A stretch of DNA of 64,000 bases from Octopus sinensis (lineage: Eukaryota): the NCBI RefSeq assembly GCF_006345805.1, contig NC_043008.1, positions 54,436,001 to 54,500,000 on the forward strand, written 5' to 3'. Both the position numbers and the translations under genes were made by a program. The notes beneath the pieces were generated by a model, which was not told where the DNA came from, did no database searches, and was given only the letters and a program-made list of their open reading frames with translations. Positions within the stretch are counted from its first letter, which is position 1. Every line of letters begins with the position of its first letter. This document shows positions 1,433-52,198 of this stretch, piece after piece.

Positions 1433-1509
1433 AGAGAATATCGTTGACGAGTTGAGCGAAGTAGAAAAACTGACCTGTCTACCAGCTCTTACTATTTTGT
1501 TGCTGACCG
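1433..1509 (+). CDS. LRRC23: LRRC23-like paralog A, 77-nt internal exon (phase 2 to 1); upstream exons lie before the window
   Basis: ttctatttcag acceptor, gtaagt donor; encodes ENIVDELSEVEKLTCLPALTILLLT, resembling the last LRR of LRRC23 (human GNMVANLGELAKLRDLPKLRALVLL, from memory). Confidence 0.8.
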
Positions 1510-1694
1510 GTAAGTCTCACATCTCACAACTTATTATCATATTGGCAATATTTATGCTCATAGGCGTGGGAGCGGCTGTGTTGTAAGTAGCTTGCTTACG
1601 AACCACATGGTTCTGGGTTCAGTCCCAGACGGAAACTGAAAGAAGCCCGTCGTATATATATATATATATATATATATATATATATATATATATA

Positions 1695-1918
1695 CCGGAG
1701 TAAACACATAAATGTGAAACAAGGTGGAAAAAAGAGTACTCAAATACCAGTGGTAGAGTAATATGCTTTATTTAAAGCAGCAGAAAATTCAACAAAACCT
1801 GTTACTGTGAGTTTCCCGTTGCTGTTCATCGGCTAGCAAAAACTGTCTGATGAACGGCAACAGGAAACTCAGAGTAACAGGTTTTGTTGAATTTTCTGCT
1901 GCTTTAAATAAAGTATAT
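1695..1918. mobile_element. Probable Penelope-like terminal-repeat fragment with inverted 72-bp arms (1761-1832 / 1847-1918)
   Basis: 67/72 arm identity, 14-nt spacer, hammerhead core, abuts a (TA)n microsatellite. Confidence 0.55.
1838..1889 (+). ncRNA. Type I hammerhead ribozyme motif
   Basis: CUGAUGA 1847-1853, GAAA 1864-1867, GUA cleavage triplet 1874-1876, stem I about 12 bp with one mismatch, 3-bp near-palindromic stem III. Confidence 0.65.
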
Positions 1919-3425
1919 ATTTCGTGTCCGTTGCCAGCCTCGCCTGGCCCTTGTGCCGGTGGCACATAAAAAGCACCATCCGTTCGTGGCCGTTTGCCAG
2001 CTCTGACTGGCACCTGTGCGGGTGGCACGTAAAAAGCACCCACTACACTCACGGAGTGGTTGGCGTTAGGAAGGGCATCCAGCCGTAGAAACACTGCCAG
2101 ATTTGACTGGGCCTGATGAAGCCTTCTGGCTTCACAGACCCCAGTAGAACCATCCAACCCATGCTAGCATGGAAAACGGACGCTAAACGACGATGATGAT
2201 GATGATGTATATGTTTGTGTGTCTGTGTTTGTGTGTCTGTATTTGTGTATCTGTGTTTGTCCCCCCTTCATTGCTGAAACAAGTAAAAGAGAGATAATGT
2301 TGTTGACCATGGGATTGCACCTAGAAAGTTCTTTCCAAGGCACAAGTCCAGGCAAGGTATTTTATGGAAGACCAGCAGTCACCCATGCATACCAGCCACC
2401 CCCTCTCCATGCCACTAATGTTATTGAAGGGAAAGGCAAAGGCCAATACAGCTTGGCACCAGTGATGCCATAACTCAATTCTTATTTCTTTATTGCCCAC
2501 AAGGGGCTAAACATAGAGGGGGAGAAACAAGGACAGACAAATGGATTAAGTCGATTACATCAACCCCAGTGCATAACTAGTACTTAATCTATCGACTCCG
2601 AAAGGATGGAAGGCAAAGTCGACCTCGGCAGAATTTGAACTCAGAACGTAATGGCAGACGAAATAATGCTAAGAGCATTTCGCCCGGCATGCTAACGTTT
2701 CTGCCAGATTGCCACAACTCAATTCTACAGCTGAGTAAACTGGAGCAATGTAAAATAAAGTGTCTTGCTCAAGAACACAACACACAGCCCGGTCCAAGAA
2801 TTGAACTCACTACCTCATGATTGTGAGCCCGACGCTCTAACAACTGAGCCATGTGCCTTCAGCACCAAGCCAACCAAAACCCTTTTAAGTTAATTTGGTA
2901 AACAGAAGCAAAAAGAAGCTTGTTGTGTGTGAGGTGGGGTGGGGTGGGGTGGAATTTGTGGGGTTACTGTCTCCTTGCTTTGACATCACATGGTGGTTGT
3001 AAAATGAGCTTCACTGCATGCAAGCAGTGTTTCCAATTTACTGTGAGGACACGTCTAGTCATAGGGAAATATTAACTTTACGGGGAAACAAATGAAGGTT
3101 GGCAGCAGGAAAGGCATCTGGTCGTAGAAAATTCACCTCAACAAAATTCTGCCCGACCCATGTGTGCATAGAAGAGTGGATTTTAAACCGACGATGATGC
3201 TGTCAATATGTGTTTATATCAGTCTATGACATCTGCATGCATTTCTTTGTCTGACGATATCAATGTATGCCTGTACAATAGAGAAACAGAAACTATAAAA
3301 AAAAAATGGCTCTAAATTAAAAGCCTCTCTTCACACTAACACAAAAAGAAAGAGTCTCTACATATCAAACCCCCAAACTCACCTCCTCTTCATGGTGCCA
3401 CAGAAAATAGATCCAAAAAAAAAAA

Positions 3426-49400: not shown

Positions 49401-49973
49401 CTGAATGGAAGAAGAGAGAGAGAATGGGGAGAGTGAGAGAAAGGAAGAGAGAAAGGGAGAGAGAAAAAGGCAAAGAGAGAAATAGTAAGAGAGATATATA
49501 GAAAGAGAGAGAGAGAGGTAGAGAGAGAAGGAGACAGAGAGAGACAGACAGAGAAAGAAGGAAAGAAAGAAAGGAGACACAAAGAGAGAAAAGGAGACAG
49601 AGAGAGAGAGAAAAAGAGACAGAGAGAGAAAAGGGAAAGAGAGAGAAAGAGGGAGAGAAAGAGACACAAAGAGAGGAAGGGAGACAGAGAGAGAGAGAAA
49701 AAAGACAGAGAGAGAAAAGGGAAAGAGAGAGAGAAAGAGGGAGAGAAAGAGAGAGGGAGAGAGATAGAGAAAGGGAAAGAGACAAAGAGAGAAAAAGAGA
49801 CAGAGAGAGAAAAGAGAGAGATAGAAAAAGGGAAAGAGAGAGAGAGAGGTTGAGACAGAGAGAAAGCAAGAGAAAGATGAAATAAATATTAATTATCAAA
49901 AGAAACAAATTTATTACCTTAAAATAAAATTAAAACAAATTTCTCATTTGTATATTTGTAAAAACATGTTATT

Positions 49974-50324
49974 GACTTTGACTTGACTTTGACCGACCAG
50001 TCCATCAGGCGTCCATTTGACACCGCTGGTCACAGCACGCTGTCCACTCCTCTCTGGATCGCGCCTTTCTCATCCACGTGATCCCAATCGTCCTCCTGAA
50101 ATCATAATTCCACCGTCGTGGAGGTCTTCCGGGTGGTCTTTTCCGCTCACACGGGTACCACTCGACAACTGCGTGCGTCCACCGATTATCGGTGAGCCGG
50201 GCGACGTGTCCAGCCCATCTATACTTGCTGCGTGTATACTCTGCGATGACATCTCTCACGCCGGACTTCTTTCTGATGATCTTGCTACTTATGTGCTCTC
50301 TCAACGAGATACCAAGCATTGACC
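49974..50324 (-). mobile_element. Young 5'-truncated RTE LINE of a second family with a 14-bp TSD
   Basis: Open 104-aa frame (KYRWAGHVARLTDNRWT...RPPGRPPRRW), (TCAAAG)-type tail, AAAAACATGTTATT at 49960-49973 and 50325-50338. Confidence 0.9.
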
Positions 50325-52061
50325 AAAAACATGTTATTATTTTTCTAAATTAAGGTGGCGAGCTGGCAGAATCCTTAGCACACTGGGCAAAACACTTAAC
50401 AACATCTTCTCCATCTTCCCATTCTGGGTTCAAGTCCCACTAAGGCCAACTTTGCCATTCGTGCTTTTGGGGGTTGGTAAATTAAGTACCAGTTGCATAC
50501 TGGGGATCGATGTAATCAACTTAACCCCTTCTCCAAAAAAAAAAAAAATTGCTGGCCTTGTGCTAAAATCTAAAATCATTATTTTTCCTGGCAGAACTAG
50601 ATCCCGTGGTTGTAAAGCAAGGCTCTTAATCACATAGCCATACCTATGCCTATGAAAAATTTCTTTTTGGAGGTGGGGAGGGGTCAAAGGTCAAACTACT
50701 TGGACCAGTATCATCATCATCATCATCATCATCATCGTTTAACGTCCGTTCTCCATGCTAGCATGGGTTGGACGGTTCAACCGGGGATCTGGGAAGCCAG
50801 AAGGCTGCACCAGGCTCCGGTCTTATCTGGCAATGTTTCTACAGCTGGATGCCCTTCCTAACGCCAACCACTCCGTGAGTGTAGTGGGTGCTTTTTACGT
50901 GCCACCTGCACTGTATCTAAATATAAATTACTGACCAGTCAAAGATTAAAATACAAGATTACCCCCACCCACACCCACACCGTCATCCTTGTTTGCTTTC
51001 ATTTATCTCCCATCTGAATATTTTAATATTTACTCTTGTTAAAATTGCAATGGAGATATATTAATAACTTGCTTATGAGCTTTCGCTTTACAAGCGTTCC
51101 CCAAGAACGAATTAACTCCTATATCTAATTCTGTATTGCCCACAAGGGGTTAAGTATAGAGAGGACAAAGAATGACAGACAAAGGGACTAAGTCGATTAT
51201 ATAGACCCCAGTGCATAACTGGTACTTATTTAATCGACCCCCGAAGGGATGAAAGGCAAAGTTGACCTCGGCGGAATTTGAACTCAGAAAGTATAGACAG
51301 ACGAAATACCTATTTCTTTACTACCCACAAGGGGCTAAACATAGAGGGGACAAAGAATGACAGACAAAGGGGCTAAGTCGATTACATTGACCCCAGTGTG
51401 TAACTGGTACTTATTTCATCGACCCCGAAAGGATGAAGGGCAAAGTTGACCTTGGCGGAATTTGAACTCAGAACGTAGCGTCAGACGAAATACCTATTTC
51501 TTTATTACCCACAAAGGGTTAAACACAGAGAGGACAAACAAGGACAGACAAACAGATTAAGTCGATTATATCAACCCCAGTACTCGACTGGTCCTTAATT
51601 TATCGACCCTGAAAGGATGAAAGGTAAAGTCGACCTCGGCAAAATTTGAACTCAGAACGCAGCGGCGGACGAAATACCACAAAGCATTTTGCCTGGCGTG
51701 CTAACGGTTCTGCCACCTCGCCACCCTCGCAGAACCATAGCAGCAGACGAAATACCGCTAAGCATTTCACCTGGTGTGCTAACGATTCCTATATCAAGAC
51801 ATTACTGTACATCAAGAATCTGAATTAATGTGTGGATGGGATTGAAGGGAAGACAGAGGTCAAAGGTTAAAGGTGTGAAGGAGGTCAAAGGTGTGAAGGA
51901 GGTCAAAGGTGTTTGGTATATCTGTGTCAGTCAGAACCCTGTGTGTGTGTGCACGCTCATGTGCGTGTGTGTGTGTGGAAGATGTTGATATTTCATAGTT
52001 TAAAAGTAAGAGACTATGAAAAGACAAACCAATAGGCTAAACAGTCCACTAGAAAACCTAC

Positions 52062-52198
52062 CTCAGGTCAACATATTTCAGTTTCTTCATCTCGGCATTA
52101 AAGCCACTAGTTGTCTCAATTAAATTGCTGTTGAGCTTCAGTTCTTCTAAATTAACCAGGTCCAAAACCCATTCAGTGCATATGATCTTATTTTGACC
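52062..52198 (-). CDS. LRRC23: LRRC23-like paralog B, 137-nt LRR exon (phase 0 to 2); upstream exons not found in window
   Basis: GQNKIICTEWVLDLVNLEELKLNSNLIETTSGFNAEMKKLKYVDL(R) vs human AQNMLKKVEGLEDLSNLTTLHLRDNQIDTLSGFSREMKSLQYLNLR (from memory); AG/GT. Confidence 0.9.

Follow-up and report, generated by a model that had tools for sequence, protein, structure and literature searches.

A stretch of 64,000 nucleotides of the Octopus sinensis genome (CM016870.1, positions 54,436,001-54,500,000, 100% identical; the window in what follows) contains parts of two genes for the leucine-rich repeat (LRR) protein LRRC23, here called copy A and copy B, which lie on either side of the neurochondrin gene NCDN. 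In our reading the pair goes back to the local duplication of one octopod LRRC23 gene, and both copies were probably kept as LRRC23 proteins of the radial spoke 3 (RS3) type, perhaps by dividing the labour between them; we put the probability of this at about 0.8. The window is eukaryotic and repeat-rich in content. RefSeq already lists both genes under the name LRRC23-like; what is given here is an accurate reading of the locus and not the discovery of a new gene. The duplication is genuine but of a fairly ordinary, lineage-specific kind, and the gene is a known one. A literature search for LRRC23 together with octopus found no paper.

Copy B and NCDN are encoded in the same direction and copy A in the other (B> NCDN> <A), and the two LRRC23 genes bracket NCDN in opposite orientation. 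The 3' end of NCDN faces the 3' end of copy A across 2.7 kb, and its start sits 6.4 kb downstream of the copy B stop codon. A first-pass annotation of the window had proposed an LRRC23 pair inverted around NCDN, and this arrangement is borne out by gene calls, by spliced mapping and by the Pfam Neurochondrin profile, which matches minus-strand pieces between the copies in colinear order. NCDN lies whole inside the window. Both LRRC23 genes are cut by its edges, and only their 3' parts are inside.

Copy A is XP_029643796.1, a protein of 323 aa encoded on the plus strand. Exons 6-8 of its eight exons are in the window and exons 1-5 are upstream of it, and the gene begins 12 kb ahead of base 1. 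Copy B (XP_029643750.1; 428 aa, minus strand) is a gene of 45 kb with exons 5-8 of 8 in the window and exons 1-4 at window-equivalent positions 69.6-88.7 kb, that is, 5.6-24.7 kb past base 64000. Both structures were obtained by exact spliced mapping of the RefSeq proteins. Within 52199-64000 this mapping places no coding exon of copy B; a tblastn search for such exons in the 52-64 kb range with fragments of mammalian LRRC23 gave only noise and was set aside.

The internal exons of the two copies are identical in length (110/257/131/137/77/143 nt), and the full series are 81, 110, 257, 131, 137, 77, 143 and 36 nt in copy A and 402, 110, 257, 131, 137, 77, 143 and 30 nt in copy B. The 77-nt (phase 2 to 1) and 143-nt (phase 1 to 0) exons on which the proposal of a pair was based are present in both genes, and the short terminal exons containing PP agree with the RefSeq proteins and the spliced mapping. 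The low identity reported for the 77-nt and 143-nt exons also holds. Over both, 22/73 residues are the same (30%) with a BLASTP E of 1e-15, a similarity far beyond chance, and the full-length proteins are 46% identical. LRRC23 of Argonauta hians (141, 104, 257, 131, 137, 77, 128 and 27 nt) and of the bivalve Potamilus (156, 113, 254, 131, 137, 77, 155 and 63 nt) likewise has eight exons, and the internal exons of 131, 137 and 77 nt are identical in all four genes. The 77-nt exon is thus a general trait of mollusc LRRC23, and the 143-nt exon is common, among these four genes, only to the two Octopus copies.

Exon 1 of copy B (window-equivalent 88651-88250) encodes 134 aa against 27 aa in copy A, which makes it fivefold longer, and 52 of the 134 residues are acidic. 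The exon carries an 'EDSKETV'-type repeat, with one unit more in O. vulgaris than in O. sinensis.

Both genes had been called LRRC23 from their window exons, and on this point family scores, exon structure and tree agree, with neither copy falling to a different LRR family. Full-length A matches mammalian LRRC23 (chains 9fqr_Xm and 9d2f_B) over residues 13-317 with an E of 1.9e-59, and full-length B does so over residues 100-417 with 9.7e-63. The next family for both is LRGUK, at 1e-30. A profile built from octopod and mollusc sequences finds named vertebrate LRRC23 at 1e-106 to 1e-113 and LRGUK at 1e-51; the same search gained no further cephalopod sequences, generic LRR proteins having swamped the output. 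The two copies also share one architecture, consisting of an acidic N-terminus, a conserved pre-LRR segment, SDS22-type LRRs, an LRR cap (PF14580) and a short acidic tail with no other domain, and Pfam LRR_8, LRR_4 and LRR_9 match on both.

Among known proteins, mammalian LRRC23 (human Q53EV4) is aligned end to end by A and B. The acidic N-terminus, a 'GNGLA..Y' segment, the SDS22-type LRRs, the LRR cap and the acidic tail are common to all three proteins. Each octopus copy is, however, only about 40% identical to the mammalian protein, and copy B has about 105 extra acidic residues at its N-terminus. LRGUK, the nearest other family in both the PDB and the profile search, has the LRR and cap module in common with A and B, but it scores about 30 orders of magnitude worse than LRRC23 and has a guanylate kinase domain, which A and B lack. 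LRRC34 (Chlamydomonas RSP15) is a radial-spoke LRR protein that was once equated with LRRC23 and is now placed in a family of its own, with another type of repeat (PMC10721216). It is not among the matches of full-length A or B.

LRRC23 is a protein of the RS3 head of motile cilia and sperm flagella; in mouse and human, the head and sperm motility both depend on it (PMC10721216). Its C-terminus is needed in mammals for RSPH9 binding and flagellar localisation (PMC10721216). The window exons encode the C-terminal LRR and cap region in both copies and so, by analogy, would cover the part on which RSPH9 binding and entry into the flagellum depend in mammals. The proteins of A and B are probably still RS3 head subunits. 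As to history, a single octopod LRRC23 gene gave rise, by local duplication, to two copies in opposite orientation. The event falls in the octopod lineage, earlier than the separation of O. bimaculoides and O. sinensis and close to the Octopus/Argonauta split. Both copies have since kept all eight exons and the whole LRRC23 architecture, even as their identity fell to 46%, and copy B gained its long, very acidic, repeat-containing N-terminal exon. That exon would add negative charge to the spoke head.

The pair may have been kept by a division of labour, either between cell types (sperm versus epithelial cilia) or between the two LRRC23 positions of the RS3 head. The split between sperm and ciliary roles, which had been suggested for the pair at the outset, and the two-position reading appear equally plausible. 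Mammalian RS3 models hold two LRRC23 molecules (PMC12399478), and the PDB entries 9d2f and 9fqr have two LRRC23 chains each. Tetrahymena thermophila has Lrrc23A and Lrrc23B, which are both assigned to the RS3 head and have strongly acidic (Glu-rich) extensions (PMC12399478). Given two LRRC23 molecules per mammalian RS3 head and the Tetrahymena pair, the octopus copies may each fill one position. The Tetrahymena pair represents an independent duplication that is likened to the octopus pair by description, not by comparison of the ciliate sequences, and its acidic extensions are C-terminal, as opposed to N-terminal in copy B.

On function alone, the two proteins might co-assemble, one at each LRRC23 position of RS3, so that a homomeric pair became a heteromeric one with no split between tissues. 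The two molecules of the mammalian models and structures, the assignment of both Tetrahymena paralogs to the RS3 head, and the acidic extension of copy B, which recalls the Glu-rich tails of Lrrc23A and Lrrc23B, are all consistent with this. They are arguments by analogy, however, and a tissue split would fit equally well; we regard such co-assembly as a tentative possibility, on the less likely side. A bolder version is distinctly doubtful. In this version A and B would form an obligate heteromer in the RS3 head, with the acidic arm of B reaching toward the central-pair projections. This would make the octopus a second independent case after Tetrahymena, tied to the fast evolution of octopod LRRC23 and possibly to sperm competition.

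That both copies were kept is suggested mainly by their reading frames. The frames had been described as intact, and all eight exons, with canonical splice sites, are open in O. sinensis, O. vulgaris and O. bimaculoides. Intact eight-exon frames after a synonymous divergence (dS) above 1 between the copies are a stronger argument for retention than the ratio of nonsynonymous to synonymous divergence (dN/dS, omega). Between O. sinensis and O. bimaculoides, omega for copy A is 0.48 by NG86 (bootstrap 0.29-0.79) and 0.70 by maximum likelihood (ML). The values for copy B are 0.68 (bootstrap 0.46-0.97) and 0.81, and those for its LRR core 0.53 and 0.70. The NG86 bootstrap intervals of both copies lie below 1, that of copy B only narrowly. 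Several observations weigh against retention under selection. The acidic exon 1 of copy B has an omega of 1.3 by NG86 and 2.2 by ML, YN00 gives omega of about 0.9-1.0, and the sequence collection holds no transcript-derived contig carrying either exact protein, only genome-derived records. From the omega values, constraint between close Octopus species is weak. The claim that the pair was retained under selection therefore stands on the intact frames after a dS above 1, and omega (0.5-0.8, or about 0.9-1.0 by YN00) lends it weak support. NCDN was considered as a local yardstick for dN/dS and discarded, with only small parts of O. bimaculoides NCDN compared, because the two species share about 85-90% identity in their non-coding DNA and open-frame matches in all frames passed the filter.

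These numbers raise the question of whether one copy, most likely B, is drifting to loss or is already non-functional, its intact frame being a leftover. The omega of copy B (0.68-0.81, above 1 in exon 1 and about 0.9 by YN00) would fit such decay, as would its 11 unique changes at otherwise conserved sites against 4 in copy A and the lack of a transcript-derived record of B in the sequence collection. Against this, about 1,300 nt of coding sequence in eight exons have stayed open in three Octopus species after a dS above 1, the LRR core of B has an omega of 0.53-0.70, and the match to mammalian LRRC23 is slightly better for B than for A. Decay of one copy is thus unlikely.

The duplication is old. 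Copies A and B differ by a nonsynonymous divergence (dN) of 0.40 and a dS of 1.1-1.4, compared with a dS of 0.14-0.21 between O. sinensis and O. bimaculoides orthologues, so the duplication is several times older than that species split. A neighbour-joining (NJ) tree built from 25 LRRC23-like sequences puts A, B and Argonauta in one clade with 92% bootstrap support, apart from the sequences of bivalves, insects, a tunicate and vertebrates. The dS values agree with the old age that had been proposed for the pair, and the tree indicates that the duplication is octopod-specific, not shared with bivalves or other bilaterians. Octopod LRRC23 (A, B and Argonauta) is 36-42% identical to that of other animals, compared with 56% between bivalve and mammal and 53-57% among bivalve, tunicate and mammal. 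By these identities, LRRC23 is accelerated across the whole octopod lineage and not in the duplicates alone.

A duplication of mollusc or bilaterian age, with one copy lost in other lineages, might be suspected from the 46% identity of A and B, which equals the distance of many distant orthologues. This depth of divergence reflects instead the general speed-up of octopod LRRC23. A, B and Argonauta group apart from the bivalve, insect, tunicate and vertebrate proteins (92%), and they have lineage-specific features, such as an insertion of one residue and the conserved Trp of 'QW(I/V)..LVNL'. A second bivalve paralog did not surface in homology searches, and Potamilus LRRC23 is not beside NCDN. 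An ancient origin is therefore very improbable.

The octopod-specific reading has its own weak points. The NJ tree covers LRRC23-like sequences only, with octopods as its only cephalopods, and the methods disagree on the order of the duplication and the Argonauta split. NJ groups A with B at 81% support. The likelihoods of ((A,Argonauta),B) and ((A,B),Argonauta) are -6199.45 and -6200.52, a difference of 1.1 +/- 4.2 (three topologies, a BLOSUM62-derived model with gamma rates, 307 sites). Strictly informative sites for the three octopod topologies split 4:4:2, and the proportions from resampling of estimated log-likelihoods (RELL) are 0.58, 0.39 and 0.03. Exon lengths were tried as evidence for A with B or A with Argonauta and rejected; those of Argonauta are unique to it and so uninformative on topology. 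Conflicting and near-equal topologies place the duplication near the Octopus/Argonauta split, before or after it.

Copy A might have been a member of another LRR-cap family (for example CFAP410, LRRC51, U2A' or DRC3), resembling copy B only through the cap motif. Its 73 window residues alone are ambiguous, ranking 8axj_A (4.3e-9) above LRRC23 (5.5e-9) with LRRC51 next (1.6e-7), in comparison with 3.5e-20 for LRRC23 and 2.6e-11 for LRGUK with 119 window residues of B. The full-length match to LRRC23 at 1.9e-59, with 8axj_A down to 2e-13, removes the ambiguity. Copy A also has an internal exon structure identical to that of B and close to that of bivalve LRRC23, and it falls inside the LRRC23 tree. 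Its membership in another family can be given almost no weight. A HMMER library search with 84 C-terminal residues of A gave one outstanding match (3.4e-31), aligned to the last residues. With that best match as query, four octopus proteins were found, all named LRRC23 or LRRC23-like, and they contain the window exons exactly or nearly so. A word-index search with 72 residues of B missed its exact protein in the database, which is a failure of sensitivity and not biology.

The order B (+), NCDN (+), A (-) recurs in O. bimaculoides (CM046612.1, 59.47-59.55 Mb). In O. vulgaris, for which only the A/NCDN half of the locus was examined, copy A is tail to tail with NCDN, and copy B exists as CAI9731312.1. 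The LRRC23-NCDN-LRRC23 order is therefore present in full in O. sinensis and O. bimaculoides, in its A/NCDN half in O. vulgaris, and not in Potamilus, the one bivalve examined, where LRRC23 is flanked by an IntS11-like gene and a gene without annotation. The one LRRC23 gene found in Argonauta hians (GAB1606088.1) is tail to tail with NCDN, in the position of copy A (the region compared excludes the DNA upstream of NCDN), and the A position is therefore probably the ancestral one. LRRC23 is known as single-copy in mammals, in contrast to the two copies of the octopus. Human LRRC23 is on 12p13 and NCDN on 1p34, whereas the octopods examined have LRRC23 beside NCDN. That the second copy is an assembly artefact, an uncollapsed haplotype or false inverted duplication, is suggested only by the general frequency of such errors in large repeat-rich genomes and is practically untenable given a protein identity of only 46%, a dS above 1, both copies annotated in three independently assembled Octopus species, and the full layout in two of them.

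The features of the window are listed in the table below.

Table. Coding features of the LRRC23-NCDN locus, in window positions (position 1 is the first base of the window).
Feature	Positions	Strand	Basis and remarks
Copy A exon 6, 77 nt, phase 2 to 1, last LRR	1433..1509	+	AG/GT flanks, exact spliced mapping
Copy A exon 7, 143 nt, phase 1 to 0, LRR cap (PF14580 LRR_9)	5798..5940	+	Pfam, spliced mapping
Copy A terminal exon 8, 'NTQKEEIPLPP*'	6873..6908	+	RefSeq protein, spliced mapping; O. bimaculoides orthologue aligns to the end
Neurochondrin (NCDN), annotated coding sequence span	9640..36936	-	714 aa, complete; gene calls, start and stop codons checked
Copy B terminal exon 8, 'LLPPEGILS*'	43368..43397	-	RefSeq protein, spliced mapping
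Copy B exon 7, 143 nt, phase 1 to 0, LRR cap	47592..47734	-	Pfam, spliced mapping
Copy B exon 6, 77 nt, phase 2 to 1	49324..49400	-	AG/GT flanks, spliced mapping
Copy B exon 5, 137 nt, phase 0 to 2, two LRRs	52062..52198	-	Spliced mapping; 52198 is the first base
Copy B intron 4 (part)	52199..64000	-	Exon 4 at window-equivalent 69695-69565

The introns contain several repeats and transposon-like frames. An NCDN intron has a direct repeat of 640 nt (32573-33212 and 34851-35490) whose copies are 99.8% identical and 2,278 nt apart. Both copies match one single place in O. bimaculoides, which suggests that the segment was locally and recently duplicated on the way to O. sinensis or that the repeat arose in the assembly. 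Two open frames at 26818-27457 (minus strand) in an NCDN intron read '...FEWHGGFKSRRTSLENNEWPRRS...' and '...VKFCVKLGKSATETLNMLQQ...' and resemble the N-terminus of mariner-type transposases; they have no Pfam match. The introns of copy B have long simple-repeat blocks of the CT/TC type (47095-47515 and 49271-49908) that read as 'SLSLSL' open reading frames (ORFs). One of these blocks adjoins the 77-nt exon of copy B, and the open frame of the exon continues into the repeat. Intron 5 of copy B holds a 114-aa open frame (50008-50349, minus strand) with '...RWAGHVARLTDNRWTH...PGRPPRRW...', which by eye we take to be like the tail of a non-long-terminal-repeat retrotransposon ORF2, again with no Pfam match. 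A Pfam scan (E <= 0.01) of four such repeat-like ORFs gave no match.

Intron 4 of copy B has very low-complexity, AT-rich tri- and mononucleotide repeats at 60600-61950, with ORFs that are runs of H, N, I, L, Y and T. This block falls at the GC minimum, where the GC skew is also strong. One short interspersed repeat, with frames '...LQLDALPNANHS.SVVGAF...' and 'RPRKDERQSRPRRNLNSER...', occurs in dozens of copies on both strands over the whole window.

As an ordinary lineage-specific duplication already in RefSeq, the locus opens no new kind of biology. The LRRC23 pair offers a clean marker by which local rearrangements in octopod genomes can be dated. Together with the independent Tetrahymena pair, the diverged octopus copies could show which LRRC23 surfaces serve which position or cell type.

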